DNA of 64,000 bases from Ascidiella aspersa. Its lineage: Eukaryota. The stretch spans positions 9,300,001 through 9,364,000 of the forward strand of contig OZ004610.1 of NCBI GenBank assembly GCA_963924565.1, written 5' to 3'. Of this stretch, positions 38,301-64,000 are shown one piece after another. A program made the translations under genes and the position numbers. A model generated the notes under the pieces. That model was not told where the DNA came from, did no database searches, and was given only the letters and a program-made list of their open reading frames with translations. Positions within the stretch are counted from its first letter, which is position 1. Every line of letters begins with the position of its first letter.

Positions 38301-41300
38301 CCATTTCAACCCAAAATATGACTTGATTTTATTCTACCTATATACAATGGGAAAGGTTTACGTTTTACTATTTTAACAGCCCAAAAAAAACAAATTAATA
38401 ACGCCAGTCAAACCAATGCCTTGTGATTCTTTGCTTTATAAACGCCTTTGCATATAAACATTTTTAACACTTGGAACGCTGTTAAAGAAGTGCCCGATAC
38501 CTCGTCTACCGATATTATAGAACTATGAAGTACCCCTGTGCGATATGTTGCAAACACTTGTCTGAATTAAAACAATATATGGATAACTCCTGATAGATTG
38601 TATTATGCGAATTAGCCTCACTTGTGAGCATTTTAGCAGTTAAACTGTAGTCTATATGCATTGCCTCACTAAAACCATTTTTTATTACCGTATATAATAT
38701 GTCTATAAAATTTTAATACAATACCCGCGATTCCCCAAATGTAAACTCCCGCTTTTGCACAACATTGAATTGTGGCTATAAAACAGCCTGTACAAAAAGA
38801 AAACAAAACTCTTAAATGGCGGTTTGTGTCTTTTTTCCCCAGTGATTCGGCCACCTTTTTCGAGACCGGCCCGCACCGCATCGGCGGCGTTTACAAGAAG
38901 GCCGTGTTTCGCGGGTACACGTCCGACTCCTTCGCCGACCCATCTCCGCATCCCGAGGACATGGGTATCCTTGGCCCGGTTATTGCTGGAGAAATCGGCG
39001 ACACCCTTCAAGTCACCTTTAAGAACAAAGCGGGGAGTCACGTATGTAAACTTGTCGTTATGTTTATTGGCTTTACAGAAGTCTGAACAAAGTGCTATAT
39101 ATGTTTTGAATATTATACGTTCTTGAAATGTCTAAATACGAATGAAATTACTTCTTAAAGTTTGTTATTTCTTCCCGAATTAGGTTATAACGTTCTTGCA
39201 AAGTGACCAAAGTGAGGCGTATTAGAAATATTAAAGCCCATACAGAAGTATATAAGTTATTATTTTGAACGTTTCGAACTCTTTATTCATTTTCAACATG
39301 ACTTTTGTGCCTTTAGGCTTTTAACGTGGAACCTCATGGTGTTTACTTCTCCGAAGCCTACGCCGTGTTGCCGAACATGAAGCACACATACACATGGTAA
39401 GACTTACCATTGGAGAAAAGTAAAAGCTAAAATATGCTTATGTAGCCTACTTCTGGTAAAAGCAACAAAAACATAAACACATAGTACGTATAGGCTAACT
39501 AATTATACTATGACAAGCTATGTAGTGCAAAATGTTTAAACGCACGTATAAACACATTTCCCACTTGCTTGGTTGGTCATAGTCACTGATTTGAAATCAA
39601 TTAAATTACCGTGTTTTATTTGTGACATAACCATAGTTGCCATTCTAGATTATTTTAATCTAGATTTAGATGTTTTGGTTTGAATCTAGATGTAGTATTG
39701 TACAATCTAGATGTTAGATGCTTTTTTAGATTTTTATTAAAAAATATTGTATAATCTAAATTAGTGACAGATTCGCTATTGACGATAAATATTTCAGTAA
39801 TTTCAAAAGTTGTTTTTTGCAAATTGAAAAAAAAAGATGAGATATAAAATCGAAATTTCAGTAACTCGTCATGTTCAGTAAAATGTTTTATAAAGCAGAA
39901 ATCTTAAATCTAAAGCATCAAGCAAGTCCCTTTATGCAACTTTATACGGCATTAAGCCAACGCCTCAGGCGTTGATTAAGCTTTTATGTTGATTTTTTGT
40001 CCAAAAGTATTGAATATTTTCAAAAATCTCTTTAGATTATTTTTTTAGATTTCTCCATAAAAATCTAGATGTTTTTAGATTATTTTTTTGGTAAATCTAG
40101 ATGATTACTGTGAGAAAAAAATGGCAACTATGGACATAACAACTTTATTCGATTTCAGTTGTCAAATAAAACGCTTGGGCCATATTTGTTGTCGGGAAAC
40201 TATGATAGGCTATGTTTAAGTGGCATTTGGACAACATTTTGGGCAAAAAAATCTACGCCAAAGTTCAATAGTCTCAACTTAATTTTGTGATCTAAACCCT
40301 TTTTTGAAATTAGTAAATTCACTTTGATATGGTTGCTACTGGAACTGTTTTGTAAACGATTTGCATTAAACATGGACATTAATGACTTCATTTGCGCTGT
40401 CGTTCCACCATTTCGCTCTCGATCGATAATAATCTATGACATCACTAAAGCAACATGTTATAATCACTAACACACATTATTTCGAACCTTGTCCCACTCA
40501 GTTCAGAATGAAAATTGAAAATCACTTTTTGCTAGCTTTTCATTGCCACTGAAAATGTTTCACTAATGTTGCAACTTTACTAAGTCATCACAAAAACGAC
40601 TTGTGAGCATCCCCATTAATTTTATTCAGGACCTTACCCGACTCGGTTTCTCCTGGTGACAACGATCCTGACTGCATCACCTACCTCTACACTTCCTCGT
40701 TAGAGTACATCTCCGACTCTAACTCGGGATTGGTCGGTCCACTCGTGGTTTGCAAGAGAGGCAAGTAAACCCCGAAACCGTATGAGAAACACAAAACCAA
40801 CGATACGCAGAATACGAAATAGACGTTGACATTCCAAGCGGTAGGAAGACTGCCATTTACTTTGATTTAAAGTTTAAAACCCTTCGCTAAAAAGTAAAAC
40901 ACCGTCATATTAAAGAAAAACACCTGTCAGATATTAAATGTAAAAAATTTAAAATGTAGATGAAAACACCTGTCAAATATCAAATATAAAAATATCAAAG
41001 GTAAATGAAAATATCTGTCAAATATCCAATAAAACGTATTTAAGCCAAAGTTTGGTAACATTAAAAAAGCATCAAATTTGTAGTAGGCCTACCGTTAACG
41101 TATTAAAACTGAAACATTTTCAGTTATAACTTATGTTAATGTTGACTCAAACTACCTTTCACCCACATTTTAGTTATCCCCTCCCAAATGTTATTCGCTG
41201 TTTACAACAGTTTAAGTTAGGAACAAAGAGCGTTTCGAAATTCAAGTAACTTATCGCCCGTATTGGACGTATCGCTCCATTGCAAATCACGCAACATAGT

Positions 41301-44300
41301 CAGAAACCAGTGTGATATGCAGGAACCCTCGCCGCGTGGATGGCTAAGCGCAACAGGTACTTGATGATGACAGTGTACGACGAAAACAGCAGCTGGTACT
41401 TTAAAGAGAACCTGAAGAGGTTCGCCGGAGATCCGGCAGGGACCAACACGAAGAGCTCCGATTTTAAGGAATCCAACATGATGCATTGTAAGTCTAGGGA
41501 TGTCCAATAATATCGGATCGGCAGTCTGGTAGGATTGACAAACGCCTGATAGTAGGTGGTGTCGGCACCGTTCCTAGTAACAATTTCATGTGTACGTTTA
41601 GCCAATCCAACACTATTTCAAGCTGGAAAAAATTATTTTAGTTTTAATATAACAATTCCAAACTGAAATTACTCGCCAAATCAAATTTTGTTAAAATAAC
41701 ATATAAAAGTTTGCATGCCTTTGCGAGTTCTCAATTTTATCTATTTCGTTAGATTAAATCAATTTTTGTATCTGATATTGGTTTACCGTGTAGGGATCCC
41801 GTAGGAAAATCAAAATAACTGCAAATTATTTTTATATCTACCGTGCTGTCGCAAAATCGGCGGGTAGAACATTTCCAAACCAAGTGCCATACTTACCTGT
41901 CTTGGCGCCTTTTACAACAAATGTATAAAATGGCGATAGTCTAACTTGTACAAACCACTTACAGCTATTAACGGGCGAATGTACGGCAATCTTTTTGGAC
42001 TGGACATGTGCGTTGACGAGGACACCACTTTCCACCTACTAGCGGTCGGCACAAAGTTCGACATTCACGCCATCAAATTCGACGGAATCAACGTCAGACA
42101 AGAGTAAGAGTCCAACAATACATTCCTTAATCAAACGTGATCATGAATAATGTCAGCCTTCGAAGTTTATTATATTCTTAGTAATTTTATACAGAAAAGT
42201 TTGCCTTTTTAAGTTTTAATTAGTTAAATACAGCTCTCAGGGGCATAGTTTTTATATTTTATTGTGAGCGACCAACCGTTATTATATTACGAATAACGCC
42301 TCGTGCCAAATTTTGCCAGTGTGATGCAGCATCTGTAACCTCACTGTAGACAAGTGGTTCTCCACCTTTTACTACTTGCAGCAAACAAACAATAGAAAAC
42401 AACTCGCGGCGCACTTTTGTATTATTACATAACAAGCCAATACAATTGCAACTTGATAATGTTGTACTACAAGGTAATAGGTAAATTACCTTAATAACAC
42501 AAATTATAATAATAGTGTAGGTTATATCTAAGTCCTGTACGCTTGCTTGAATGCCTGTTTTTATAAGTTTCTTTATCACGTCGTAATGCTTTGGTCGTTA
42601 AACAAAATCCATGGCTGTGCAGGGATATACCAAATGGAGCGGTCAACCTGTTCCCTCACACTTCGCAAACCATCACGGTTCGACCGACGAACGCTGTAAA
42701 TGGAATGGTCTACTGCGTTCTCATCGACCATCTCGCTTCCGGGATGTTTGCAGTCTTTGAGGTATTTTGCAAAAGTGACCTGGATTTTTAATAAGCCTCG
42801 TCTCGTCACCGAATGACGATAAGGCAACTAATTTAAGAAAAACTTATATTGATACGCATAAGATATATTACAAATAAATACTTATCCCGTCCGAGATACG
42901 TGAAAAAGGGTAATAATTATTTTCAGTCATCTGGATCTAGTCAGATTAGTTTTTTATCCCCAACTCTTAACACGAATTTAAAAAGCTCATTTATACATTA
43001 TTTTTACCTTCTACAGTCTTGGATTTCCATTGAATTTTTATCATCTTGTCAAACAGTAAATTTAATTGTGTTCTAAGTTTGTTGCCCACAATAATCGACG
43101 CGATTTATAAATAGGCCTAAAAGTCAATTTCTTGCTGGGTTCGAGTTATTGTGTCGCCCTCGGCGTATTTCACAAATAAATGTCGGATAATATCTGATCG
43201 GTGACGATTCCGTATACCAATTGATAATATCAATACTCGTCCAAAACTGGGGTGATATCAGTGCGGATTTGATAGCAAATTAGCTTGTACCTTCAACCAT
43301 GATTTGCGATCAAACGCGACGTTTACCATCTTAAAAAATCACAGATAACAATCGAAGATAATAGTCTTTCCAACGAAAAGGTAAATTGGTGCCTTACCAT
43401 TTGAAGACATTGCACTGCACATTTAATTATTTACAATTTTGCTTATTTGACAGTAGTAATGACGTAATTTGATATCAAGTCGGATGGACGTATTTTTGCC
43501 CGAAATATAACCTATCGCAATAGAATACAGAGAATCGGACATTCCCAATACCAATAACCTTGTTTTACCGCAGTCCGACGTCTGCAACGAGAAAAGTTTA
43601 AAGCCTGGTCGATACACATTTTGCACGCAATCGTTTTAAATTAACAAATAACGCCCACCGCCCCAGACCGATTCCGAGTTCATAAACCGGCCTTACTTGC
43701 GTATTCCAATAACATTGTCGCGCCTGCAATGCAGTCCAGTGTCTGCAACAAGGAAGCAGTTGATGAAGCGGAGGAAAGGCAGGAAGCAGTTGAGGAGGAC
43801 GGAATCACAAGACGCTACTTTATCGCGGCCGAGGAGACGCAGTGGGACTACAGTCCTTCCAAGCTCAACATCGACGGCTCGTCGGTAAACGTCAAGGGAA
43901 ACCACGGCTACGATTACGCGCATCGAGAACCGGGCAAGACCATCGGTAAGAACCTGCTACTGTTTTTTTTAAGGGGCTCTAGATGACGTTGTACTGGAAT
44001 GTGGACTAATTGCTTCCCACCAAGCAGTAATTTCTCATCATCAGTTCGATATCCTCGTAACTAAGTAGTCATTTCGCTATACACATTATTTCACATCAGT
44101 TCTATATCTTCATAACGAAGTAGTCATTTCGATATTCACATCAGTTCTATGTCCACATAACATAACGAAGTAGTCATTTCGATATACAAATCAGTTCTAT
44201 ATCCACATAACGAAGTAGTTATTTCGATATACAAATCAGTTCTATATCCACATAACGAAGTAGTTATTTCAATATTCACATCAGTTCTATATCTTCATAA

Positions 44301-47300
44301 CGAAGTAGTCATTTCGATATTCACATCAGTTCTATGTCCACATAACATAACAAAGTAGGCGTTTCGATATTCACTTTAGTTGTATATCCTCATAACTAAG
44401 TAGTTATTTCGATATTCACATCAGTTCTATGTCCACATAACATAACGAAGTAGTCATTTCGATATACAAATCAGTTCTATATCCACATAACGAAGTAGTT
44501 ATTTCGATATACAAATCAGTTCTATATCCACATAACGAAGTAGTTATTTCAATATTCACATCAGTTCTATATCTTCATAACGAAGTAGTCATTTCGATAT
44601 TCACATCAGTTCTATGTCCACATAACATAACAAAGTAGTCGTTTCGATATTCACATCAGTTGTATGTCCACATAACATAACAAAGTAGGCGTTTCGATAT
44701 TCACTTTAGTTGTATATCCTCATAACTAAGTAGTTATTTCGATATTCACATCAGTTCTATGTCCACATAACATAACGAAGTAGTCATTTCGATATACAAA
44801 TCAGTTCTATATCCACATAACGAAGTAGTTATTTCGATATACAAATCAGTTCTATATCCACATAACGAAGTAGTCATTTCGATATACAAATCAGTTCTAT
44901 ATCCACATAACGAAGTAGTTATTTCGATATACAAATCAGTTCTATATCCACATAACGAAGTAGTTATTTCAATATTCACATCAGTTCTATATCTTCATAA
45001 CGAAGTAGTCATTTCGATATTCACATCAGTTCTATGTCCACATAACAAAGTAGTCATTTCGATATGCACATCAGTTCTTAAATCTTATAACAAGGAGTCA
45101 TTTTGATATAGCGGTATTGTCATAACCAAGTAATAATTTCGATATACTTATAGGTGTGAGTGAATAAAATACATTCCAATCACAAATTTATACTCAGGTT
45201 CCACATACATAAAGGCTCTGTACTACCAATACACGGACGACACTTTCACAACGAAAGTTCCAAAAGCAAACCATCTTGGATTCTTGGGTCCAATCATTAA
45301 AGCAGAAGTTGGCGATAAAATCTCGGTGGGTAGAAAAGCTTCAAAAATAAAAATAATTTGTCACATTTAAAGCAGTAATATATGATGTTAATCCTACGAC
45401 CGATGTTATGTTTTTAAAGATTACGTTCTTCAACAAAGCAAAGCGTCCTTACAACATTCACCCCTGGGGAGCGATCGACCCCAACGCCGATAACTTGGAC
45501 CCAGTTGCTGTCTTACCTGGTGAACGAATGAATTACGAATGGACGGTAGGTTTCCGAGCAATCTGGGTTGATGAAAATTCTCCTAATTTACTGGCAGCAA
45601 AATGTATCCATACATTTTTCGTCTAACGTTTAAATGTAAAAAGTGGCCTAGCCTAGAAGGGGCTGTTCATGGTGGGTTCAGTTTGATTGTTCCAATCAAA
45701 GCTGCAATATGAAGACCGAAGTTTAAAAACTACTAAGTTCAATTTTGTGGAAAATAAGATTTCGCCAGAAAAGAGTTGTATGGTTGTTAACCAGTGGGCC
45801 ATGGCTCACTGGTGGGCCATGGAAACTTTTTAGATGGGCCACAGACCAATTTAGAAAAGCTAGATTTATAGAAGAATTTAGTTTTATTTGCGTCACTATA
45901 CCTAACTTTACAGGAATAATGGCTTGGGGAGGAATTGAGTAGGAATGAAAATGAAACATAAATTTATTGTTATATGCTCCGCTATATTTTGTTCTAAACC
46001 TTTTTATAGTTTGTCCATTCATAAAAATTTATTGGATTACAGAATTTTCGTTCAACGAAAATGGGCCACGAAAGAAAAAAGGTTGAAAACCACTGGTCTA
46101 AACTCTATGCCATTGTTAGTCTGTGCAAAAATTATCTTAGAAACTACTTTATTTCGGTAAAGCACAGCCGATTTCCCTAATTGCGCAAATTTAAGTAAAA
46201 GGGGCTACTTAAGGTATACGTTTCGTTGAAAAAATACATAAGTCTAGATTAATTTATATTTTTTTTGTAAACAAATATATTTTAGGCCACATTAGTGAGT
46301 TATATGAATAACACCAATCATAGAAGTTGCAAACCAATCTCGGTAAAATCATGATTTGCAGCAGCTTTGCCAATTTTTAACATCAAATATCTCCAAAGTC
46401 GTATTTTCTGAAAAAAGTTGTTTTAACTTACGTCTTTAAATATGAAAGCAACGTTAGAAAAAGTATGTTTCGACACGACGCACAGATCACGACAAAGTTT
46501 CTATTTGTAGGTGCCGGAATCGGCGGGGACTAGCGGCGAACAACCAAGTTGCGTGTCGTTCATCTACCTCTCATCAGTTGATAAGCCGATTGACGCCACA
46601 GACGGACTGATGGGCCCTTTGCTTGTGTGCCGGAAAGGTTCATATTGACGTATTAGATTATTGGCCATGATCGGACCAATTTGAATAATTTAAGGGTTAA
46701 TTTTTATGATAAGGACTTGACTTAGCTTTTTAGTTATCCAAAGTGACTTGACTTGAACTTAAGTTCCCTCAAAAATGACTTGGACTTGCAAGGCAACGAC
46801 AACCATGCGAAACGTAGGAAAAAACAAACAATATTATAGGTTAATAACTTACATAAAATCAATATTAAGCGGTTAATGCCATCTGTTAAGCATTAAATTG
46901 GTCTAACTGGTTAAATCTTGTCACCAAACTTCAGATCTGGCTTAACTTGGGGCTTATGCTTAACTAGGGGCCTGATTATAACCCCAATTAAACTTGAATA
47001 CACATTTATTGCTCTTAGGTTTTTGGAGCATTTCAGTCACAAATCAATATACTATATCCTATATATTAAGTATAGCATAACTATTGACAAGGGCAATTTG
47101 TTTTAGGCAACCCAAACGGTATCTTAAATTACTATCGAAGGGTAGCTCAAAGCGTACTTCTGCAATTATACATCCAAAAATTTTCAGTTAGACTTTGTTG
47201 CTTCTTTGAAATAACAGAGGACCTCAACATTTTAATAAAAAGAAAATACTCTTGTAATTTGAATCAGTACTGGTATACTAACTGCTATAACGCTCTGAAA

Positions 47301-50169
47301 TGATTTAGTACCATAAATCAGTAATAATAGTTCATCAGTCAATAAATCATGCAACGTAGCACGGGCAATCGGGCATTTTCACCGAGCCCAGTTTGATAGC
47401 CAGTTATCGGAACATACAAAACCTGAGCTGATTGTATTCAACATTAACTCTGACGAATGGTTAGGCGGCCTGGACAGCGGCGACATAGACGAGGAGTTCT
47501 TCCTCCAGTTCCAAGTGGTCAACGAAAACCTGAGTCACTACATCGACGACAACATCCGGGAATTTATCGGAGTCGAACCGAGCGAATTCGTGCCGGGCAA
47601 GAACTTCGAGGAGAGCAATAAAATGAAAGGTGAAGTCTTTGAGCTGATGGCGAATCGTTTTATTTCGATTGTAGATTGTACGTTGCAAAGTCTGACCACC
47701 CCGAAAGTAGGGTTATAATGCTTTAGGTTGGTATTCAGCGGTTTTAGTAATTTGGAGATAGTCATACGGCAATCCTTTCACTGAAAAACAGACTTTTGTC
47801 GTGCCATTATTCGTAGCAGGCATATCTGACTGTTTTAAGGAACTACACAAGCCAAACAAACTTCCCAACAAGCCATTTAAAAACAACCTACTGTCAGGAT
47901 CAGTTCGAAAATATATATATCGGACTCTGTAGCCCTGCTTTTCAGTAATAATGCTATCTTATTTCAGTAATTACGTTTTGTTTTTATATTGTATTTGCCT
48001 CTCCAGGAATCAACGGGTACCTGTCTCATGTCGATGGACTGAACATGTACAAGGACGACATCGTGCGGTGGCATTTAATCGGTTGGGGAAACGAGAAGGA
48101 TTATCACTCGGTTCACTTCCACGCCCACACTTATGATGCGATGTGAGTAGCGAATTAAGATAATATTATAGTAATAATATTTAGATTTATGTTTGTTTTA
48201 TTAAGGTAGATTGTAACGAAACCTCCCTAAAATGTATCCAGAAAATAGTCAGTTTCCAAAGTTAAATATAATTCGTTTTATTTAGTTTTTACCTAAATGT
48301 TTTAAGTCATTCTAACAACAATGTAGAACCACAATATCACCCGAGAGTATGGAAAATTGATTTACTTATAAATTAATTTCATTTTTAGCCTTTGAAAGTA
48401 TTAACATGCGGTTGGCTACGAAACATTTGGCTCTAATTTGTTTTTTCCGAAAGCATAAAAGGTATGGGGCAACTGCACTGTCAAAACAGTTATTATTTTA
48501 CTCTTTTCGCTTTAGTACCGACGGCGTATATCGCGGTGACGTGTTCGATGTTTTTCCGGGATTCTTTGGAACAGTTGTCATGAGAACAATCGCCGTCGGT
48601 GATTGGTTGCTCCACTGTCACGTGTTCGATCATATGCACGGAGGAATGGAAACCACCTACTCCGTGATGGACAGCGGTCCGTAGCTTTATTCTTTCCTTA
48701 ACCAGTTTAACAAATATGTTTTACAAAATGTTTAGAATTATTAGTTTGTTCAAACTTGTGAAGTAGGTTAATATTAGCTTTATTATTAAAGGGATCATTG
48801 GCATTTTGACTTTACATTATGTCACACCAAGTATTTAATATGGCATCACTAGTAATACTGCAATTAATTTTAGCATACTGCGGCTACCTGTGTAAAATGT
48901 AAAAAGTGTACTTTATTATTGATATCATGTTTTTTTTATTTTTGCTTTAACTAAAAATAATAGGCTGTGTAGGTTTTTTATAGATATTCAAATATATATT
49001 TCTAAATAAAAAATTGAACTAACAGTTTGCTGCATGATATTGACATTCTTTTCCGGATTGTACATTTTCTACTTCTAATGTTAATGACCTAAGTAGATTT
49101 GTTTTGCCTAATTGTGTTTGCTCGACGAATATTTTATATGTAATTTTTAACGTAGAGGCCTGCCAAAATGTGTTGATGTACTAACAAGTCTGAGTAGTAA
49201 TTATAGACCTTATTGTACCTCGTGTCTCGTTGCATAATACCATTTCTTTTTCATAAAATATTTTCTTCTTTTGACCCCAACTGTTTTTTTTAGTTTTTAT
49301 TCATAATGTCTAACTGTTTAAAGTATAGTACTGCGCTTAACTGTCTCCCCAGTATAATTTTGGTCCTGTTTAATAATATATCTGCTCTTATGGTGATGCT
49401 TGTTTTTCTTGCACGACCTCTATTTGCTCGGTTTGATTTTCAAAACATGTATTTTAATTTTAACCAACTATATACGTCTTAAAAACCGAAGCAAGGATCT
49501 TTCTTTGTTTATGCTTGTTGACTTTTCTAATAAAGGACTTGATATAATTTACTAATCTTCTGCATACGAGTTGATGAGAAAACTCCATTGGCATCCGGGC
49601 TTTCCAGTCAGAGACTTCTAAAACATGCGCACTGACCCGAAGCAAACCCTCTTGGCGCAGGTATAACGGCAGAACAGGAACGTCCTCACAAGGAGTGCTG
49701 TGAGGCGCACAAGGACGGCCCTAACTTCGTGCTGGACTGCAGCGGCATGGGCCTTGCCAATTACAAAGACCTCTTCAACGGCAACCGGTGGAAGGTAAAC
49801 GCGAGCAACGGGCACGGCAAGCAGCGAATGGTGGCCGCAAAGCTTGTGACCAGCATCGATCTCAGCTACAATATGCTGAGCGACCGAGAAGTAGTTAAAG
49901 TGCTCAAGCGATTCCACAATCTCCGCGTGGCAACCATCAACGGGAACCCGATTGCCAAACTGCACCGCAACCTGCTTTCAAGGAACAAGCACCTCGCCAC
50001 CCTGGTGGCCAGAAACACCCCGTCCCTGACCGGCGTCGCCAGAAAGCTTGTAGTTGGTCGCGACATGGATATGATCGACCTGTCCAACAACCCCCAGTTG
50101 CTGCCGGCCTGCCTCAATCGTATGTTCATAAGCCAGGAACACTTCCAGGCTTGTCGCGACGGGCAGTAG
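32328..50169 (+). CDS. Ceruloplasmin/hephaestin-like six-domain multicopper oxidase, copy A, with predicted C-terminal LRR exon (1211 aa; 1044 aa if it stops at 48684)
   Basis: Exons: 32328-32494, 32828-32969, 33931-34115, 35431-35546, 36021-36127, 36561-36755, 37196-37322, 37854-38034, 38843-39041, 39317-39396, 40630-40760, 41323-41487, 41965-42103, 42623-42761, 43735-43945, 45198-45325, 45420-45545, 46511-46637, 47465-47629, 48007-48142, 48516-48676, 49661-50169. Total 3636 nt, divisible by 3. Signal peptide [23 protein letters not shown]|[18 protein letters not shown]. Trinuclear-cluster ligands HPH, YHSH, HSVHFH, HCH. Type-1 sites [11 protein letters not shown] (D2), [11 protein letters not shown] (D4), [12 protein letters not shown] (D6). 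No TM segment. Confidence 0.92.
39632..40132. mobile_element. Non-autonomous DNA transposon (hAT/P-type, 8-bp TSD), 501 bp
   Basis: TIRs CATAGTTGCCATT / AATGGCAACTATG. Perfect 8-bp TSD GACATAAC at 39624-39631 and 40133-40140. Subterminal clusters of TCTAGA/TTAGAT motifs at both ends. Confidence 0.88.
44020..45150. repeat. Minisatellite of 45/50-bp units (~24 copies) filling most of an oxidase-A intron
   Basis: Unit CATAACGAAGTAGTTATTTCGATATACAAATCAGTTCTATATCCA, with CATAA-duplicated variants and degenerate edges. Explains ORF 44746..44979. Confidence 0.95.
49661..50169 (+). CDS. LRR-domain exon, predicted last exon of oxidase copy A
   Basis: Branch-like CTGAC at 49632-49636 and acceptor cttggcgcag| in phase 1. 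An in-frame TGA at 49633-35 lies just upstream, with no ATG or signal peptide before the Cys cap. Sequence [32 protein letters not shown]...[11 protein letters not shown]...[13 protein letters not shown]...[14 protein letters not shown]...[21 protein letters not shown]...FQACRDGQ*. Confidence 0.85.
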
Positions 50170-50307
50170 CTCGTGCCTTTGGTTGCTCGGCAATTTTCGT
50201 TGTAAATATGTTGCTTGCCCGGACACACGTGGACCAAGGCGAAAAAGCCGAGGCAAGCGTTTGTAAGATGTACATATATCGTTATGATTTTTACGGTAAG
50301 GCTTTCA

Positions 50308-50429
50308 ATTAAAGTTAAAGCTAAGTACACTCATTCACTGTTACGAACCACGATTAAACTCTGATTAATGTGTACAATACGGGATTCAACCACATTTGAG
50401 ATAAAAACATTTCAGCGTTGAACTTTATT
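50308..50429. terminator. Candidate convergent polyadenylation signals of the two oxidase-LRR genes
   Basis: ATTAAA on + at 50308-50313 and 50353-50358; AATAAA on - at 50429-50424. All lie within the 440-bp gap between the two stop codons. Confidence 0.5.
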
Positions 50430-50609
50430 TAATGGATTTTGCGTCAATTGCCCATGCACAAAACGTCACACTTTACGGTTTTTAAGTCGTAATACACTTA
50501 TATACAATTGAAATAAGGCAAATTTGGTGCAAGCCAGCGGCGTTTTAAACGCTGCAGAGAGATCTGGGCGAAATTAGCTTAGGTAACATTAAAAACAGGC
50601 ACCTCAGCT

Positions 50610-51154
50610 TTAGGGTTTCAGGCAGTTTGTAAACTCCTTCATGTTGTAGAAGACGCGGCGCAGACATGCCGGATTAAGGCGCCGGTTGTCGCTCAGATCT
50701 AGCAGCGAGAAGTCGTGCGACGGTGTGCCGCGTGCCGCGTTGCCGGCGACAAGCGACGGCGACACGTAGAAGAGGCTGGGCATGTCGCGCATAATCAGCG
50801 CTTTAAGGTGCTCGTTGTTCGCGACCAGACTACCGGTTACAAACCTGACACGGTTGCCACTTAAGTCGACCGACCTAAGGTTAGGAAAGGCTCGAAGGAT
50901 GCCGCGCGCCTCAAAGAAGTTTAGCCGGTTGCCGCTCAAGTCAAGGTGACTGATTTGAGATGGGTCGATCGTGCTTACGGAGCCGTTGGGCTGGCGGACG
51001 CGCACAGCAGGGCCCGGGCCTATGAGGCCGGAGCTGCGTCGCAGTCGCATGTTGCCGCAGACGCACGCACGCTTGCCGGCGACCTCGGTCAGATCGCAAA
51101 CGTCGTACTTCTTCCGCGCCTTTCGCGCCTCGTCGAACAGTGCACTTGTCATTT
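50610..51154 (-). CDS. LRR-domain exon, predicted last exon of oxidase copy B
   Basis: Acceptor aatttgcag| in phase 1 matches donor CGA G|GTGAGA at 51903/51902. Sequence [38 protein letters not shown]...[11 protein letters not shown]...[13 protein letters not shown]...[14 protein letters not shown]...[21 protein letters not shown]...FTNCLKP*. Clearly homologous to the copy-A LRR exon. Confidence 0.87.
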
Positions 51155-54100
51155 CTGCAAATTGTTCGTTCAAGTTTGGTTTAAGGTGTTTAGGTGATAG
51201 GTATGCTCGTAGGTATGGTGCTGCTTGTTTATTGATTTGCCTTAACGTATTATATTATTATCATGAATAACAGATATGAATTTTAGGTTATTAAGATTTT
51301 TAAACAGATGTATACTTTTCGAAAATGGCAGGACAAAAGATTTACTCAGCCAAATACATAAAGACAAATGGCTTCGAAGTACCAGTAATTCGTCATAACT
51401 AACTGTTAGGTAAGAAAATATTCAGGATCCATGCTGCACAATGCCTCCCATGATGCTTACAACCAGGCGCATGGACAGTACCAATTTCAAAACCGGTAAG
51501 GCCGTAAACTGTGAACCACGTATTTTTGTTGGGTCAGTTATATGACCCCTTAAATAAAAATCCTATTTTAGTTCTGTCAATATAGGTGGAATATAGGCTG
51601 TATAAAGTCGGAGTCGGACTTGAAGATAATGACTTTAGTCGGAGTTCGGGAGTCTAGCTCAAGTTTATTTTTTCGGCTGGATTTGAAATATAACCCGCAG
51701 CCCTGCTTATAACAAAGAGTATAGTTATCGATAAAACTGCCCTTTCCAAAGTCCAAGCTGCCCTTTTAAAAAAACAAAATCATCTTCTCACGCCGTTACC
51801 ACAAAACCCAGCATTACAATGCTGTACACAGCATTCACGCCTTTATACGATGTGAACGAACCGCGGGCCAGCGTTAACCTCATCGTCATTTTATGCTCTC
51901 ACCTCGTGGCGCGACGGTGTAGACTGTCTCCATGCCGAGCCTGACGTGTTGGAAGACATGACAGTGGAGCAGCCACTCGCCCACCGCCACCGTGCGCATG
52001 TCCATCGTGCCGAAGAAGCCCGGGAACACGTCGAACACGTCACCCCTGTAGCTGCCGTCCGTGCTGCGAGGAATCAATAGATTTTCACAATCAAGAAAAA
52101 AAAGGAACCGGTGTCCATTTCATAATAGAAAAAAGAGAACACAGTGAAAACCCCCATAAACGACCATAGCCTATTAAACATCGAGAGAACCAGCGGACGC
52201 TCAAGTTGAATTTACGCCTGTCTAGGTCCAAGTTACAAAAAATAGTTTGTCGTTAGCCACCGTTATTTTCGCTTAGTGTTTTTGGTCCCGTTAGAATATA
52301 CATCGATTAATTATTAGTAACCTTACCCGCCCTCGTGTTTTTGTAACCAATTATTATTTTGAACTAGAATTTGCTTTGCGGGCCGGGTCAGCAGTGCTGC
52401 ATTTTTATCTACAGCAGGTTAGCGTTCTGACTAGGACCACAATAGTATGAAAATATATTCAAATTTTGCAGTGGAAGGCAAACAACACAATGTTCAAAGG
52501 GTCGTATTAGTTTTAGCTTTCTGCATAATTTTCAAACATTGTAACTTCTGTCTCATAATAAGCAAGGTCGAAATTTGGGTGCGTAAAGTTCATTTTTACG
52601 GCGAAATGCACACTTACATAAGTTTGAATGTGTTAGCGTGGAAGTGAACCGAATGGTAATCCTTCTCGTTTCCCCAGCCAATCAAATGCCACCGCACGAT
52701 GTCGTCCTGGAGCATTTGCAAGCCGCCCACGTGAAATAGGAATCCGTTGATGGCTGTAAAACAGCGAATATGGTTAAATACTTGTATATGATTTCGTATA
52801 AGCAATTCCGAATTTTTTTTTTGGTTCCGAGGTCCACAGAAAACAAGGGCGGATATTAAATATATGAAAACATACTTGGTCAACAAAACTTCTAAAAATC
52901 AGAGACACTCATATTGCCTCCTGGCAGAAGTTTGCCAGGCCAACTCAGTTGAACTTTTATTACGTGACTAAAGATTGTTCTATCTCAGTTTTGCCGTTAC
53001 CAATGGCCCCTCGAAAAAGTTTTTATACTTGGGAAATGTTCGAGTATATTCTTGTTGAGCAAAGTTGAATTACAAACCTTATAAATATATATAATAATTA
53101 GTGTAAGATTTGACCAAAATACAAACAAAGTTCACATCGTGTGCTTTTATAATGTTTTTTATTCTCTTTGGCTTTATTGCAGTGATGATACAGCTTTTTG
53201 CACGGGGAAAAACACGGAGAAAAAAATTACTGCTCAAATGTTTAGGAGGTGATGCTGCGTCTAATAAGAAGCATACCTCGAACTCACCCATCATTTTGTT
53301 TGACTCCACAAAAGCGCCGTTTTTCTTGTTGAAGCTGGATGGGTCGGTTCCGATGTACAAGCGAATGTTGTCATCCAGGTAGTGACTGAGGTTCTCGTCG
53401 ACGATGTAAAATTGCAGGAAGAACTCTTTGTCAATTTCAGCGTTGTCGATCTTTCCTAAAACAAAATACAAGAGGGAGTTACGAGTTGCCTGTCTTCCAT
53501 TGCTCTATAGTAAAAGTTAACGTATATATATATATGATGAAATCTATACTAAAAGTGTTCAACGTATATATGTGTGATGAAATCTCTAGTAAAAGTGTTC
53601 AACGTATATATATGTGATGAAATCTCTAGTAAAAGTGTTCAACGTATATATATACGTGACGAAATCTCTAGTAAAAGTGTTAAACGTATACATATGTTAT
53701 GAAATATCTAGTAAAAGTGTTTAACGTATGTGAGTATGTGATGAAATACAATACAGTATTGCACTTTATTATCAGATTATTTTAACAGATGCTACAGGCA
53801 TTGTAAACTCTCTAATAACTACTAAACCTAAATGAATTCACCTGGCCTGCAAACGACTAGTGGACCCATCAATCCATCGGCGACGTCAGCCGCTCTGTCC
53901 ACTGAAGACACGTAAATGAAGGACAAGCAACTCGGCTGCTTGCCAGTGGGCGACGCCGATTCTGGAACCTACGAAAATATGACGAGTTGAGGTTGAGCTC
54001 TTTAGGCTACATTTACACGCTATGTTAGCCTGTATTTTTTATAAGGTAACGCGAATTTTCACGCTTGTCTACAAGTCCGGTTAAGAAATTTTATGTTTCA

Positions 54101-57100
54101 AGTGGCAATAGAAAGTCTATTCACATTACCTGCTCAAATGTGCTGATCCTGAATGATCATATTTGTTATACGAATATTTATTTTATTCACCAAGCATCGA
54201 ACAGTCAAGTCGGAAAAGACATGTATTACCATCATAGGTATTTTAATTTTTAAAAGAACTTCTTTACCTTCCACTGGTATTCCTTTACTTCACCAGGCGC
54301 AACTGAGTGGTTGTGTATAGTGTACGCGGCGTCGAATGCTCCCCACGGATGCATGTTGTATGGTCGATTGGCTTTGTTCCAAAACGTCACCTATGCATTA
54401 TAACGATATGCTAACTGTAACCAGAGCATCAAACTCTTAGAAGCTTTACAGCATAATTATATTCGAAGAACATACAGGTGATGTTAAAACTAAATTTTCA
54501 TTAAATTTTACCTTAAAGGCTTAGTGTCACCAATAGATATCTACCAAACAATGTCGCCACCAGTCGTTTTTCCATATCGAAGCCCTTATGCTACAATTTT
54601 TAAAGCAACCGACCTCTGACATATCAACTATTGAAATGAACTTACATGTATAGTATCGCCCACTTCTGCCCGGATCGCCGGTCCTAATATTCCCATGTGT
54701 TCTGGAGTTGGCGTGCGAACGGTAAAGGTGTCGTCGGTGTAGCCAACGTACAAAACCTTCTTGTACACCGAACCTGCAAAACAACCATTTAAGTTGCTGT
54801 AGATAATAAATCACTAGAGGCTCACACTTACAAAAATAGAAATTACCTGGTTCGAAATTTTAATGAGAAAGTGAACAAGTTGTTTACAAGGGTTAGAAAT
54901 ATGTCCGATAATTGACTTTGTAATCCGATAAATTTTATTACCATCAGTTGTCAACCGACTATTTTGTTGATAAATATACCTTTCAAGGTAACAATTGCTG
55001 CATAAAATACCTATATTAATTTAGTATCGTATCGGTAACGACACTACCACTTAGCATTAGGTATCGGATCGGATCCGATATTATCGGACTTATCTAGTTG
55101 CAAGTTAGTCAGACAATGCTTGGGTTTCGTGTACAAAAAAATTATCAAAAGTGAGGGCACGGGATATGGCGATTTTCAGGAAGCTTTCTTATGAAACGCA
55201 TCAGCTGTATAATACACAAATAACATCAAAGCAGCAAACCTATAGTCTTCCCGGGAATCCTGTGCAGGTGCTCGTAACCGTAGTTGCCCACCACGTTTAC
55301 CGAGTCGCCCATCGTGTTCTTCCCGGAAGGATTGTAGTTCCACATTACTTCCTCTGCGGCGATGTAGTAACGACGAACTGTGCCCTTCGCTGCGCTATTT
55401 ATTGTAGTTGTGCTGTCTTTGATCATGGCAGGGGATTCGTTGTTGCACGTCTTTGCCTGTAAAGATTGGCGGATGCAACCGTTGATTTATATTAAAAAAA
55501 ATGGGGATTAAAGCGAGAAAGTAGGCTACCTTAACAAGTAAACGCTGTGACACTTTTTTGAAGAAACTGTGAAGAGTTTGCCTTATTTACATTGGTGTTT
55601 TAGTATAACATTTTGTTTCTTGATTAAATCGGAAAGCTAAACCGCAATCAAAATTTTAAAAGATAAAATATGCTACTTTAAATGATTAACTTTTGCAACT
55701 TTCTATGTCACCATCATGCCATAAAACCCAAATAGTCGGGCCTACATTTAAACTATGTATAGTGCTCATGCAAAGCGATTTTTAGAAATCGCTTACAACC
55801 AGTTAAACGCACCTCGAAAATGGTGAAGAGTCCGGCCTTAATGTGATCCATAAGACTGCAGAAGAGAACACCCGCACCGGTCTGTTCCGCTCTGACCGTC
55901 ACAGTTTGTGAAGTGTGGGCGAACAGGTTAATCGCGCCCGTGCTCACGCCGCTAAAAACGCAAAGAGGCTTCGTTTTTGTGGTAATTTCTTTAGTATTTC
56001 GTCCGGCTACGAAAGTAAGATTAGGTAAAACGTGTATGTTTTTGCAACTAAAAGCTTACTTGATTACGTGTTTGACAATTTTTGTTGCCTTAGATAAAAC
56101 TTATAAACTGATTAGATTGGAATAATACTAATTTGATTCATTTATTTTTTGAAGATTTTTAAACGACAATCATGGCCCACGGTTTTAAGGTGGTGTGCAA
56201 GAGCCTTTCTTTAGGCATATTGAGTTGATTTTTACTGATATTAAGTGTTGTAATGAGTTAAGTCAATGACTTGGGTTTTGAATTGACACAAATCTTTCTG
56301 GCAAATTACTTGACTTGGACTCAAGTCATTGAGTCCAATGACTTGGGTTAAATTAAGTGTTTTCACTTAACATTATGTTGTTTTTAATACATTTGAGTTG
56401 AATTGTTTCTCATAATCCAACGAGTTTAACAATGTTGATGGTTTATCATTTATTTTTTATTTTAGTGGTTCGACTTTGAGTTGACTTGGTCTGGGACTTA
56501 ACTTGTATTTTGTAAACGACTTTGGTTGATATGAGTAAGGTGATGTTACGAAATGTCAAGTGGTATACATAGGAGACAAATGAATTACTTCTATTAAAAT
56601 AAATTGTGTCGTTTGTTGTAATTTGTAAAGTGTTTTTTTTTTACCCAACGATTAGTCTTTGAACTAGGCCTATATATTTAATTTTTAGTAACTATGTATA
56701 GTTGTTACTCGGCAACAACAATTGTGCAGTTGCTTCGGAACTGTTATCCAAAAATACCTAACGCAGTGGCGGTTAATCAAGTTTATTGAACAGTTTTACT
56801 GAATAAATCGAGTTTATTTAAGTTCGACTTACGCCAACTTGCCGACAGCTCTCTTTGCGCGTTTACCCCCAATAAATACATACATTATTGCTTTGCCATG
56901 TCCAACGCTTTGCCGCGGCTTCCTGTCATTAGCGCCAAGTAAGCGTAATATCCTCAACGCGGGCGCTCAGCATTAACAGGAGCTGTCAGCGTTAATGCAT
57001 TCAGTCTACGTAGGTCTACGCATGTTATCCTATATAACCAGGTAACGCGCCACGCGCCGAACAGGAAAAAACACATTCGGGCGCAAAGGTAACATCGCCA

Positions 57101-60100
57101 CATAGGAAGTCGCTCTTACTTAATTTTGACGTTGACGCCGTCGAACTTAATGGCGTGAATGTCGAACTTGGTGCCGACCGCAACTAGATGAAAGGTCGTG
57201 TCCTCGTCCACGCAAACGTCGACGCCAAACAGGTTGCCGAACAGCCGGCCGTTGATTGCTGAACATGAAACGTCGAACAGTTTTAGTAACCGTTTGCTGT
57301 TGCCATACAACTAATTCAAGAAATTTTCAGCGCCGAAATTTGATCTTACAGTCGAGTCGAAACTTGCTACAAAAATTCTACACCATTACTTGGTCAGTGG
57401 AATAAACGTTTAACAGGGTAGTCCAGTTCAAACCGATTACTCGGGTGAAACATGCTGCCCATATATGAATAAGATATGTAATTTGGCATGTTATCGTTCC
57501 TATAATTTTAGGGAACTGGAAACTAGAACTGCTTGGCTACATCTGCATTGCCAAGTTGTCAACAAAATCTTCGCCCATATGTATATAAAAGATGCTAGGT
57601 TTGATATAACTTGTGTTCTTTTCCCCGGCCTGCTGACAATACAGACCAAGTGTTGACAAAATCAACCTTCTAATAATCGTACCGTTAGACTTTATAAAAT
57701 ATTTCAGTTATGAAAGATTCTCACAATGCATTTGGTTTGGCTCAGTCGGAATCTTCTTTCCCGCTGTGGGAACAAACATCTTCATGTTCTCCTCGAAGTA
57801 CCAGCTCTTGTTCTCTTCAAACACGGTGGCAAGCAGATATCGGTTGCGTTTAGCCATTTCTTTCTTGAGCGTTCCTGGTGATTTGGAAAATCGCATCATT
57901 AAACTTTATCTGGTTGAGACATGATATTTACCACTTAACGTTTGGTAACACTCGAAAATTACCCCATGCGTTGTTAAAGTTTTTCGTTATATTTAACAGA
58001 CGTCTGCGTTTTTTTGTTTAATTTGGCATTTCAGCTGTTCTAAATATTGGCCAACTTTATATCACGAATAACGTTTACGCAATTGCACTTTGTTTTGTTG
58101 TCCATTTCTTTAATTCAGTAGCAAAACAGTGTTTGAAAAGCATTTGATACCTCGCTTGCAGACCACCAACGGTCCTATTAGGCCGGCGTTAGAGTCAGCA
58201 ATGTATTCGAGTGCCGACGTGTAGAGATAGGTGATGCAGTCCGGGTCGTTGCTACCTGGGCTTACCGAATCGGGCAGTGTCCTGCAGAGATTTGTTGGAT
58301 AAAGATTGCTTTTTTTCAGCGTAAAAGTGGCAACAAGTTGATTGAACTTACCAGGTGTAAGTGTGTTTTTGACCCGGCATTGTAGCGTCTGATTCGGTGA
58401 AGTAAATGCCGTGCGGTTCGATGTTGAAAGCCTGCAAAACATCCCAAATATATTTTTTTACCAATGTTTCAGTTCAGTGCTCATGACAACCAGTTGCCGC
58501 TAAAATCTTTAACGTGCGAGCTTGCTTGCCGTGTTTTTTTTCATGATTGGTATGTCAACTGAACGCTTTGTCGGGCCATTGAAAGACGAAACCCGAAAAA
58601 TCGCCTTGAGAATCTATCTTACATTTTATACATTTATTAGCAGTTCAACAGACAAAACATGGCCGGATTTAGGCAAGATGATTTAATCTGCTTCTTATGC
58701 TTTGTGTAGCATAATAGAAGTTTGTAAGCATAAAGCTTCACTTAGGAGCTCTGTAGCCTGGTTTAACAAAGCAGTATTCTCCTGGAAAGACGTTCGGCGG
58801 GATTGATCAGAGCTATAGTTTTGAAGATATTAAAAACTAGCGCTGAACAAACAGCCGGTCGTGGCAACTTACGTGCTTGGCGGCCGTGTTTTTAAATAGG
58901 ACTTTGACGGTGTCGCCGACCTCGGCCGATATCACGGGCCCGATGATGCCCATGTCGTCTGTGCGTGGCGTCGGCTCCGCGAAAGCGCTTGTCTTGTAAC
59001 CGCGAAAGACCGCTTTTTTGTAAACACCCCCGATCTTGTTCGAGGACCGTGCGAAGTAGGTTGCCGAGTGTCTGTGTGGCGAAGCGAATAAAAATTATCT
59101 TGGTTTCTGCGTCGCGTGAAAATCGGTATATTAATTGGGGGCGGCCTAAAACGAAGAAGATTCGATTCGGGTCCTTGCTTAATGTTATTTTATGTTAAGT
59201 AAGATCAGCCAAACGAGATGCTTAGACATTTTACGTTGTTGTTTACAACACTTTTATATAATAGTGTTATCAACGCTTGGTTGAATACATTTTAACTAAC
59301 CACGAACGGAGCATTGTGGAACGCGATTAATTGTTATGTCTAAAATATTTAACTCGAAAAATGCACTTTGGACGGCTGGAGTGTTGTTAAGTTCCACTAT
59401 AGGGCAAATCGGGTATCATGCTATAGCAGCCTAAACGATACAATACAGCATCGTTAAACAAAGTATAAATTGGAAAAGAGCGTAAGTAATTTTTTATAAC
59501 TAACATCCCGATGCACTGAATACATCAATAAGTTTAAACCTAACTTATCAGTGAACTGGATACACCTTTCAGGACGCTAAGTTTTAGCTATCACGTTAGC
59601 ATGCTAACTTTTTCATATACAATTACATATGACGAGAACAACGTACGTTCCACTCGCATTGAGAACTTCCTCTGTCAGTTGGTTGAATCCACTTGGTCCG
59701 TAATCCCACATCACCTCCTCTGCAGTGATGAAGTACTCCCGGACCTTTCCCGAGAGCCCGGTGGTGGGTGAGGAAGATGATGGCTTCTTGCATCCGGCAT
59801 CCACTTCCAGCAGTGCGTTCATACCCTCTGCGTCAACATTACTTTTGCTTGTACGATTGAAAGGGGACACGTGCATAGAAAAGTTTTATAACAAAAAGAT
59901 GGTGGAATAAAAATGAGCCTTCACATTCTAAATCAATCTTATATGAAAATTTTCATTAATAATTTCAAATAAATAGTTTGCCTTGGCACGGATGGTGAAA
60001 AACAAGCGATTCTTTTTGGAGTAGTTAAAATTAAATTATCATTGAAATTATTCTAATAAGAATGAATTTTATCTATCTTCCATAAACAAACCAATTTTAG

Positions 60101-63080: not shown

Positions 63081-64000
63081 CTACGTACACGACTGGTAAA
63101 AACGACCTGGGTTACCTTGTAGCCTTTTTGGGGCGCTTTGACTAAGAAATACGCTAAATTTAGGCTTATCGCGCTCATAAGGTTGGGTGGCTTGCGGGTT
63201 TATACATTGAATTTTACCAATATGGACATGTTCTCTTGTAGCTTAAATTATTATTGTTGCCCTAACAAATACACCTGCCCTATTTCGTAAAAAGGTGTTG
63301 TTTTTTTAATAGTTTTTCGAAAAATGTGTACCAAATAAATTGTGAAAAGGGAAAATACCTGCAGATGGAAAGTTAAAATTAGTTTATCGCGGCCCAAGCT
63401 TCAAATTAGGCCTACCACAACTGTAAAAAATAGCCTAATAGAACTACTTTGAGGATTCTAAGTGCGACCTTGTGGGGCTGTGGTTGTCCCAAATGTTTTT
63501 TAATCCGTTTCAAACTGTTTTATTTTTTACAACTGCCTTTTCAATGTAGCGCAGGATCCATGCAAACCAAAGTTTTTCACCTATTAAATTCAAACATGTC
63601 TTCTTAATAGATGGGTTTTATACCGTTTTGTGGTAGACACAGAGGTATGATATAGGGCAAGGCTATATTGAAACGTAAATTTTTCAACGAAATTTAAAAT
63701 CACAATTATTTTATTTCGCAAACAAAAAATGTCGTTTTCACTCAGGATATATTACTCGCCTAAAAATTTAGCCGATTAATCAATGGATTACGTTTATGGT
63801 CAATGAAGGACGTATTAGCATACAAAGTGCGGCGTGAAGTTAAAATGCGTAAAGCGGATTATATTACGTTTGTCTGACTATAATTACATTTGCGCTTTCA
63901 ACCTAAAGTCGTCCAGCAAGTTGTATATCTCGGAATGTGCCGTGAGTCACTAAGTAGCAACGAAACATTTCCATACAAGATCATGTCTATTTTCAAGCCA

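Follow-up and report, generated by a model that had tools for sequence, protein, structure and literature searches.

Secreted six-cupredoxin multicopper oxidases of tunicates with a putative spliced leucine-rich repeat tail

Two convergent paralogs in the window (the whole 64,000-nucleotide [nt] stretch of the Ascidiella aspersa genome analyzed here) very probably each encode a single protein, namely, a secreted six-cupredoxin oxidase with a leucine-rich repeat (LRR) tail that is joined to it by splicing and that may act as a binding handle. In the proposed layout, a signal peptide would lead into a catalytically equipped multicopper oxidase of the ceruloplasmin/hephaestin type, and a conserved phase-1 intron, situated about six residues before the point at which ceruloplasmin ends, would join this enzyme to a terminal exon. 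From the terminal exon would come a short linker, predicted to be disordered, and then an LRR domain, basic and ~160 amino acids (aa) long. Its N-cap would be a hairpin held by one disulfide pair and its C-cap a helix carrying a second cysteine pair, and about four repeats would lie between them. As a putative handle for proteins or other ligands, the LRR could place the soluble oxidase at the cell surface, in the matrix, or on some other partner.

The body of oxidase A (positions 32328 to 48676, plus strand) begins with the ATG and signal peptide, comprises six cupredoxin domains, and is delimited by its paralogous exons and by matches to ceruloplasmin A-domain starts. Its last cupredoxin exon (48516 to 48676) holds the HCH...H...GM copper site and ends in a phase-1 donor, G/GTCCGT, which is weak in having C at both +3 and +4. 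Intron A (48677 to 49660; 984 nt) is AT-rich (GC, 0.30) and closes with the acceptor ...TTGGCGCAG directly ahead of 49661, where tail exon A begins (49661 to 50169, with a TAG stop at 50167 to 50169); this exon encodes a linker and a short, Cys-capped LRR domain, 168 aa in all. Oxidase B lies on the minus strand and extends past the window end: the greater part of it (52064 to 64000) is recognized by exon-by-exon paralogy with A, and exons 1 and 2 fall outside the window, on contig L016 (3059-2904 and 2409-2278, minus strand), the first of these carrying the signal peptide ~2.06 kb beyond position 64000. The last cupredoxin exon of B (51903 to 52063) is 75% identical to that of A and likewise ends in a phase-1 donor, G/GTGAGA; it is followed by intron B (51155 to 51902; 748 nt), whose acceptor (TTTGCAG; ...AATTTGCAG) stands directly ahead of 51154, and by tail exon B (50610 to 51154), which specifies a linker and a Cys-capped short LRR domain totaling 180 aa, with its stop at 50612-50610. 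No RNA families were detected in the window with Rfam.

A sequence-only reading had placed the splice sites at 48676 and 49661 (A) and at 51903 and 51154 (B), and on re-reading, all four were found at these positions, both joins being in frame (phase 1 to phase 1). The same reading had reported a CTGAC motif and an in-frame stop ahead of acceptor A; both exist, the former as a branch-like motif ~27 nt 5′ of the acceptor and the latter as a TGA nine codons 5′ of the first full codon of the tail. The GC content at third codon positions (GC3) of the tail exons (0.74 to 0.75) equals that of the oxidase exons, against a GC of 0.30 to 0.38 in the introns, and a foreign origin of the tail exons is rejected on this ground.

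The oxidase body is, judged from exon translations and matches, a six-domain enzyme with a signal peptide and intact copper ligands; the count of six rests on per-exon matches, the exons having been searched singly. Three A-domain start motifs occur in A (at ~32397, 37895, and 43801), each matching a ceruloplasmin A-domain start, and B has the corresponding exons. Both last exons match Pfam Cu-oxidase_2 above its cut-off (28.2 bits in A and 30 bits in B), and that of A aligns to residues 990-1039 of the 1,046 residues of ceruloplasmin (E = 1.5e-24). In both paralogs, domain 1 presents the ligands HPH and HSH and domain 6 presents HFH and HCH...H...GM, whereas the T1 sites of domains 2 and 4 read C...H...M or L; the domain 2 site has an axial Leu, as does that of human ceruloplasmin. 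Immediately ahead of the T1 His of domain 6 stands an Asp in A, in the Phallusia protein CAB3252517.1, and at loci L006, L010, L011, and L015; B has Gln there, and L012 has Glu. We take this Asp to correspond to ceruloplasmin D1025, part of the acidic Fe(II)-binding site. By eye, exon 1 of oxidase A (at 32328) encodes a hydrophobic leader ahead of the first domain and exon 1 of oxidase B (L016:3059-2904) a signal peptide.

The junction geometry recurs well beyond the window. We compared seven loci at which the oxidase and the tail share a contig: A and B of the window and five others (L006, L010, L011, L012, and L015) drawn from other assemblies and metagenomes. At every one of them, the last cupredoxin exon stops at a G/GT donor exactly 160 nt past its first full codon, and a phase-1 AG acceptor on the same strand, pyrimidine-rich in its approach, follows 142 to 1,517 nt downstream and opens into a tail of 168 to 196 aa with four conserved cysteines. 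The residues ahead of the donor vary (MDS, APR, LDN, TER, VEG, IDR, and IER), but the GGT is invariant. The arrangement exceeds chance, since the five further loci repeat the donor position, both phases, and the open frame. Within the 308.6 Mb genome to which the window belongs, the tail was found only twice, each time following one of only two such oxidase exons, and the convergent A/B pair is also present in another species (L012). The oxidase-plus-tail layout is conserved in several tunicates.

The same loci bear on whether the LRR reading frames could instead be separate genes, either with promoters of their own or as downstream cistrons of an operon receiving a trans-spliced leader. Tunicates use spliced-leader (SL) trans-splicing and operons, both of them common in the group, and the tails of B and of its orthologue at L012 have a Met one or two codons after the acceptor, so that B-type tails could conceivably be downstream cistrons. 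Two or three sense RNA reads also fall in intron A just 5′ of tail exon A (49270 to 49643) and could mark an alternative 5′ end, and the gene calls in databases are short, stand-alone proteins. Set against these points, the tail of L011 contains no Met in 196 codons, and among the other six loci, four (window A, L006, L010, and L015) have their first in-frame Met only beyond the N-cap cysteines; where the A-type and L010/L015-type tails have this first Met, L011 has Asn at the equivalent position. None of the seven tails has a signal peptide, which would be expected of a free-standing Cys-capped LRR of extracellular type, and at 7/7 loci the donor GT is retained, as are both phases, despite the variable flanking residues. 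Moreover, the stand-alone tail gene calls start at GTG/TTG codons or inside intron that has been translated, most of the short homologues being prokaryote-style ORF calls on metagenome contigs. With a Phallusia sequence that crosses the junction in frame, these observations make separate genes very improbable.

That sequence, CAB3252517.1 (A0A6F9DEX9), is annotated as a "hephaestin-like protein" of Phallusia mammillata and carries the last two cupredoxin exons in continuous frame with the tail, joined at the same junction. Compared with window A, it is 90% identical in the oxidase exon and 43% identical in the tail. Our search recovered no contig encoding it, and it was itself the only protein to match its tail part in a homologue search. 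A de novo mRNA assembly of P. mammillata, destined for ENA and with sequences named by their best Ciona hit, has been described (PMC7237864), and CAB3252517.1 probably derives from such an assembly. A profile search of 1.84 billion representatives gave full-length tail matches of 141 to 260 aa and none of ~1,200 aa, an absence that says little, as the query was the tail rather than the full-length fusion. The claim of the sequence-only reading that both paralogs are six-domain oxidases spliced to an LRR is thereby upheld in the main, through the geometry common to all seven loci, the Phallusia protein that spans the junction, the Met-less tail, and the LRR models presented below.

Transcript evidence from the window's own species is sparse: from one RNA run, of which ~6% was read, 16 reads could be placed, with no joint among them, a number too small to test the junctions. 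A second run was rejected as transcript evidence, since it resembles low-coverage DNA with pieces in introns; the 48375>49149 joint of this DNA-like run, bounded by AT..TT, is not a splice. In the accepted run, the last oxidase exon of B has a depth of 2.8, and the 187 nt of intron B beyond the donor (51701 to 51887) have a depth of 0, although these values come from few reads. They are relevant to the idea that the locus has two products, the tailed form and, through intronic polyadenylation or read-through of the donor, a tail-less secreted oxidase. At every one of the seven loci, reading through the donor meets a stop after only 2 to 25 added codons, which would leave a tail-less protein whole; donor A is weak, the AT-rich introns contain many hexamers resembling poly(A) signals, and the secreted and GPI-anchored isoforms of ceruloplasmin, made from alternative 3′ exons, offer a parallel. 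The drop in depth past donor B speaks against read-through, albeit in a single sample. We consider two products a real possibility but not the expected one; this course would be compatible with the spliced, LRR-tailed oxidase proposed here but would alter how the locus works.

The two tails are homologous to one another (29% identity; E = 7e-21), and some features of tail A raise the question of whether it is decaying or under relaxed constraint in this species, leaving only B and the A-type orthologues elsewhere to make a working fusion. Its donor is GTCCGT, it has no LRR match in Pfam, and the oxidase A exons and tail A received none of the 16 RNA reads; furthermore, the three variants seen in tail A of another individual (49677, 49826, and 49889, with codons read by hand) are all non-synonymous. 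But its 168-codon frame is unbroken and retains the core LRR positions and all four of the conserved cysteines, its GC3 (0.75) resembles that of other coding exons, AlphaFold models it as confidently as B, and in Phallusia the A-type orthologue is found fused. Decay of tail A seems quite unlikely.

Assignment of the tail to the LRR fold is weak by Pfam and firm by structure prediction. In Pfam, tail B reaches 23.5 bits against LRR_8, under the 27-bit cut-off, and neither tail matches LRRNT or LRRCT at E values up to 1. Repeat core residues are nevertheless conserved in an alignment of tail homologues, and the PACL...F...C C-cap that had been described as conserved is present across 10 homologues. 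Two conserved cysteines precede the repeats and two follow them, compared with four in each canonical LRRNT or LRRCT cap; the caps are of their own kind rather than members of those families. AlphaFold models of tails A and B each have a pLDDT of 90.8, with a pTM of 0.84 to 0.85. Foldseek against the PDB gave, for tail B, a best match to the amphioxus VLR-like protein Bf66946 (4xsq) at an E value of only ~2e-3, and an exhaustive VIA-align search had only LRR proteins among its top matches, almost every one an ectodomain (Z = 12.2 for TLR1 and hagfish VLR and 12.0 for Slit2 D4). The tail resembles 4xsq, 2o6q (hagfish VLR), and 2wfh (Slit2 D4) in size and fold (Z = 10.5 to 12.2 and rmsd = 2.7 to 3.7 Å over 118 to 134 residues), sharing with them an N-cap hairpin, few repeats, and a C-cap. 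It differs in that identity is just 18 to 23% and each cap has one Cys pair in place of the usual two, and, unlike free LRR receptors, this LRR forms the C terminus of an enzyme.

No tail contains a hydrophobic stretch of transmembrane (TM) grade or a hydrophobic C terminus: the highest 19-residue Kyte-Doolittle hydropathy is 0.29 to 1.03 across the seven tails, and the C termini are polar or basic. By this measure, the GPI signal and TM helix of membrane-anchored ferroxidases are absent from all seven. All seven tails are also strongly basic (pI 9.6 for A and 10.2 for B), and the earlier description of an Arg/Lys-rich tail lacking TM and GPI signals therefore holds, with hydropathy staying at or below 1.03.

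The closest known systems differ chiefly in what follows domain 6. Vertebrate ceruloplasmin, which has secreted and GPI-anchored forms through alternative 3′ exons, shares with the tunicate proteins the six cupredoxin domains, the three A-domain starts, the signal peptide, and a variable attachment right after domain 6. In the window's two genes, by contrast, a folded LRR of 168 to 180 aa is spliced on ~6 residues before the point at which ceruloplasmin ends or its GPI signal begins, and the C terminus, unlike that of GPI-ceruloplasmin, is not hydrophobic. Hephaestin and HEPHL1 (zyklopen) are likewise built on a ferroxidase-type body of six domains, and an extension C-terminal to domain 6 sets their site of action; theirs is a TM helix with a short cytoplasmic tail, whereas the tunicate extension is a soluble, basic LRR with no TM segment. 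Coagulation factors V and VIII, which have lost oxidase function and possess discoidin C1-C2 domains and a B domain, also append C-terminal modules to a six-cupredoxin scaffold, and tunicate exons match their A domains, but in the tunicate proteins the copper ligands are retained and the appended module is an LRR rather than discoidin C1-C2. Factors V and VIII are the nearest precedent for a six-cupredoxin scaffold with a C-terminal binding domain.

By analogy, the LRR would play the part taken by the GPI and TM anchors of vertebrate ferroxidases and by the C1-C2 domains of factors V and VIII. In place of a membrane anchor, it may dock the oxidase on ferroportin/transferrin-like partners, an anionic matrix, or microbes. 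Divergence is much faster in the tail than in the enzyme, and the tail's putative partner is therefore probably fast-evolving or lineage-specific.

Tunicates have no antibody-based adaptive immunity, and one could suppose that a fast-evolving, VLR-like recognition module on a secreted multicopper oxidase serves them as a combined recognition and oxidation effector. Iron could then be withheld, or oxidative cross-linking carried out, at microbial or wound surfaces, and A and B would differ in specificity. Several observations fit such a role: between-species identity is 43% for the tail against 90% for the neighboring enzyme exon; tails A and B share only 29% identity; all tails are strongly basic; the best Foldseek match, obtained with tail B, is an amphioxus VLR-like protein; and all three variants of tail A are non-synonymous. 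We nonetheless regard an effector of this kind as unlikely.

The layout of a six-domain copper oxidase with an LRR tail is apparently undescribed. The sequence-only reading had known of no LRR-tailed member, and our searches of the literature on ascidian/Ciona hephaestin, ceruloplasmin, and multicopper oxidase with leucine-rich repeat found none, although that reading had missed the precedent of factors V and VIII, with their C-terminal docking domains. A 2013 phylogeny of six-domain proteins included two long Ciona models (1,670 and 1,434 aa) and did not discuss their C-terminal domains. Gene calls in public collections present the tail as a small orphan protein, a systematic annotation problem.

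The C terminus sets where a six-domain ferroxidase acts: ceruloplasmin has nothing or a GPI signal there, and hephaestin and zyklopen have a TM helix. Tunicates, which are sister to the vertebrates, would represent a third solution, in which a phase-1 intron attaches a folded LRR at the equivalent position. By implication, the end of domain 6 would be an ancient point at which exons governing localization are exchanged. The arrangement predicts that ascidians have a binding partner that positions copper-dependent oxidation.

The window holds two convergent, paralogous six-domain multicopper oxidase genes, A on the plus strand and B on the minus strand, whose gene models were searched one exon at a time, unjoined. 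Gene A starts with an ATG at 32328 (+), from which a hydrophobic signal peptide leads directly into the first A-domain start motif; gene B continues off the window, and its first two exons, with the signal peptide, lie ~2 kb past 64000 (L016:3059-2904 and 2409-2278, on the adjoining stretch). A translated locus-versus-locus comparison recovers every conserved exon in both genes and places three A-domain starts in A (~32397, ~37895, and ~43801), which a PDB sequence search matches to the A-domain starts of ceruloplasmin. The last cupredoxin exons (A, 48516-48676, plus strand; B, 52063-51903, minus strand) exceed Pfam's threshold for Cu-oxidase_2, and this exon aligns with ceruloplasmin residues 990-1039 of 1046 (E 1.5e-24). 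Translated exon by exon, both paralogs show trinuclear-cluster His pairs in domains 1 and 6 and T1 Cys/His sites in domains 2, 4, and 6; with these copper-ligand motifs legible, both bodies look like working oxidases. In B, a Gln (51951-51949, minus strand) precedes the domain-6 T1 His (HCHVFQH versus HCHVFDH), where Asp stands in A, in the Phallusia mammillata protein, and in most of the other loci, and the domain-4 T1 site (55810-55947) has an axial Leu versus Met in A. The substrate site or redox tuning of B may be altered relative to that of A.

Both genes end in an exon encoding a leucine-rich-repeat (LRR) tail (A, 49661-50169, plus strand; B, 51154-50610, minus strand). The junctions that the sequence-only reading had called, 48676/49661 in A and 51903/51154 in B, are exact: the donor of A (...S G|GTCCGT after 48676) is followed by the acceptor ...GCGCAG|, with the tail from 49661, and that of B (...R G|GTGAGA after 51903) by ...TTTGCAG|, with the tail from 51154. 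As that reading held, both joins are in frame, phase 1 to phase 1, and an in-frame stop stands upstream of tail A, nine codons before the first full tail codon. The tails (168 aa in A and 180 aa in B) share 29% identity (E 7e-21) and, by a hydropathy check, are basic and free of TM-grade or GPI-like hydrophobic stretches, again as first described. Tail and oxidase exons have the same GC3 (0.74-0.75 in the tails), in contrast to the AT-rich introns. Across the whole 308.6 Mb genome, the tail and a last cupredoxin exon of this type are each found at A and B only.

The introns carry repeats of their own: a 45-bp minisatellite in A (44090-45109; ~22 copies, with higher-order periodicity at 280 and 330 bp), and a smaller 40-bp array in B (53525-53747). 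A segment upstream of A (25004-25102) matches one in an intron of B (56369-56271) at ~60% when translated, with stops on both sides; the two probably represent one repeat, or a piece of one transposon, present at both sites. Around the last oxidase exon of A, contigs from other runs skip 773 nt (48375>49149) with non-splice ends, short inverted matches occur (48360-48377 and 48924-48941), and another individual has a 29-bp insertion at 48786; this exon and its flanking introns look like a region of structural polymorphism or repeat.

The LRR identity of the tails, barely detected by Pfam (LRR_8 at 23.5 bits in tail B, no LRR match in tail A, and no LRRNT or LRRCT match in either), is borne out by structure. 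AlphaFold models built with a 10-sequence alignment reach a pLDDT of 90.8 for both tails (pTM, 0.84 and 0.85) and comprise a disordered linker of ~8-15 residues, a beta-hairpin capping the N-terminus, one further hairpin, approximately four strands from the repeats, and a helix at the C-terminus. In an exhaustive structural search, the top matches are LRR proteins, mostly ectodomains (TLR1 and hagfish VLR, Z 12.2; Slit2 D4, 12.0; an amphioxus VLR-like protein, 10.5; as well as TrkA, Nogo receptor 2, LGR5, and decorin); Foldseek, too, ranks the amphioxus protein first. The confident models and these matches together identify the tail as a small LRR domain whose caps are non-canonical.

A two-tail profile searched against 1.84 billion representative proteins returned eight full-length tail relatives, all of them short proteins. 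Wherever their contigs are long enough (L006-L009, L010, L011, L012, and L015), the tail is closely preceded, on its own strand, by the last cupredoxin exon. The main alternative to a fused tail is a separate unit downstream of the oxidase, either a gene of its own or an operon cistron, a reading favored by the ATG that directly follows the acceptor in B-type tails and by the occurrence of trans-splicing in tunicates. Against it stands the invariance of donor and phases: in a scripted junction table of seven loci, including A and B, every locus has an exon end G|GT exactly 160 nt past the first full codon of the last cupredoxin exon, a pyrimidine-rich AG acceptor 142, 211, 748, 984, 995, 1127, or 1517 nt on, and a tail frame open from that acceptor in phase 1. 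The residues preceding the donor differ in each locus while GGT is invariant, as a constrained donor would predict and a conserved C-terminal glycine would not; the 142-nt intron, in locus L006, has the consensus donor GTGAGT. Moreover, no tail has a signal peptide, and the 196-codon tail of L011 contains no methionine, such that stand-alone translation from an AUG is impossible there. Four cysteines are conserved in the tails, one pair on each side of the repeats, and the start Met chosen by metagenome gene callers is positioned after the N-cap cysteines and is Asn in L011. An additional tail-less isoform, produced by intronic polyadenylation, is possible, given that read-through past the donor would add merely 2-25 codons.

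The remaining argument against a separate gene is a sequence that spans the junction. One of the eight relatives, P0002 (NCBI CAB3252517.1; UniRef100_A0A6F9DEX9; "hephaestin-like protein [Phallusia mammillata]"), consists of 260 residues in which the last two cupredoxin exons and the tail run uninterrupted and in frame, with the junction at the predicted place; identity with A is 90% in the last oxidase exon and 43% in the tail, which marks the source of the window as an ascidian related to Phallusia. UniProt entries of this kind are presumably mRNA records from the group that assembled P. mammillata embryo mRNA. Embryo mRNA of this species was assembled de novo, with an ENA deposit announced and models named by best Ciona match (PMC7237864). 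We infer that P0002 derives from that assembly; if so, a related species provides transcript-level support for the A-type junction.

In L012, from the run of a different species, the convergent arrangement is kept, with the 3' end of an A-type tail on the opposite strand ~540 nt from the B-type tail, which indicates that the two-gene unit predates the split between the two species. This more compact genome (introns of ~67 and 211 nt) fits the B-type penultimate exon, last exon, and tail, plus the A-type tail 3' end, into 1.7 kb (L012:1-1724; Logan DRR090687). P0004 and P0010, which end in ...PDCFRESF..., form another tail clade on contigs too short to reach an oxidase: L013, a scaffold from an open-ocean metagenome (Tara Oceans), and L014, from Logan SRR20439968. 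Their origin is a hint that pelagic tunicates have the tail as well. In L010, an RVT_1 reverse-transcriptase ORF ~2.4 kb downstream of the tail exon (12917-13150) is probably a retroelement insertion.

The RNA junction check suggested by the sequence-only reading, applied over 47400-53000 to X5, the only RNA run of the window's species, yielded 16 reads and no joint above the listing threshold, far too thin as a test. In gene B, the last oxidase exon has a depth of 2.8, the 187 nt past the donor are uncovered, and the 3' part of the tail plus UTR is covered in the same orientation as the oxidase exon, a pattern that fits splicing within the limits of those few reads. Gene A is essentially silent, with no reads on its exons; two or three reads sense to A in the intron just upstream of its tail exon (49270-49643) could represent pre-mRNA, an alternative 5' exon, or an unrelated transcript. 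Of the variants that run X2 shows in another individual, all three in tail A, with codons read by eye, are non-synonymous (49677, 49826, and 49889; Q>H, R>Q, and E>A), and those in tail B (50793, 50960, and 50964) comprise two synonymous changes and one S>A, a hint that selection on tail A is relaxed or diversifying. It is possible that tail A is decaying in this species, as its weak donor, its variants, and the absence of expression in X5 would suggest, but its frame, cysteines, codon bias, and model confidence are all intact.

Taken together, the evidence is solid for a secreted six-domain oxidase with complete copper sites, to which the last exon appends a folded and basic LRR domain at the point where ceruloplasmin ends. 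The literature searched contains no description of an LRR-tailed six-domain oxidase, in agreement with the sequence-only reading, which knew of no such member. The nearest architectural precedent is factor V/VIII, in which discoidin domains at the C-terminus of the same scaffold mediate docking to membranes. LRR ectodomains serve in binding, and the vertebrate members of this enzyme family act where their C-terminal appendage places them; by analogy, the tail would most likely tether a soluble oxidase to a partner located on a cell surface, in the matrix or tunic, or on a foreign surface. Divergence is far faster in the tail than in the enzyme, a sign that this partner is probably fast-evolving or lineage-specific. 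Such an enzyme is of interest to both iron and copper biology and chordate evolution.
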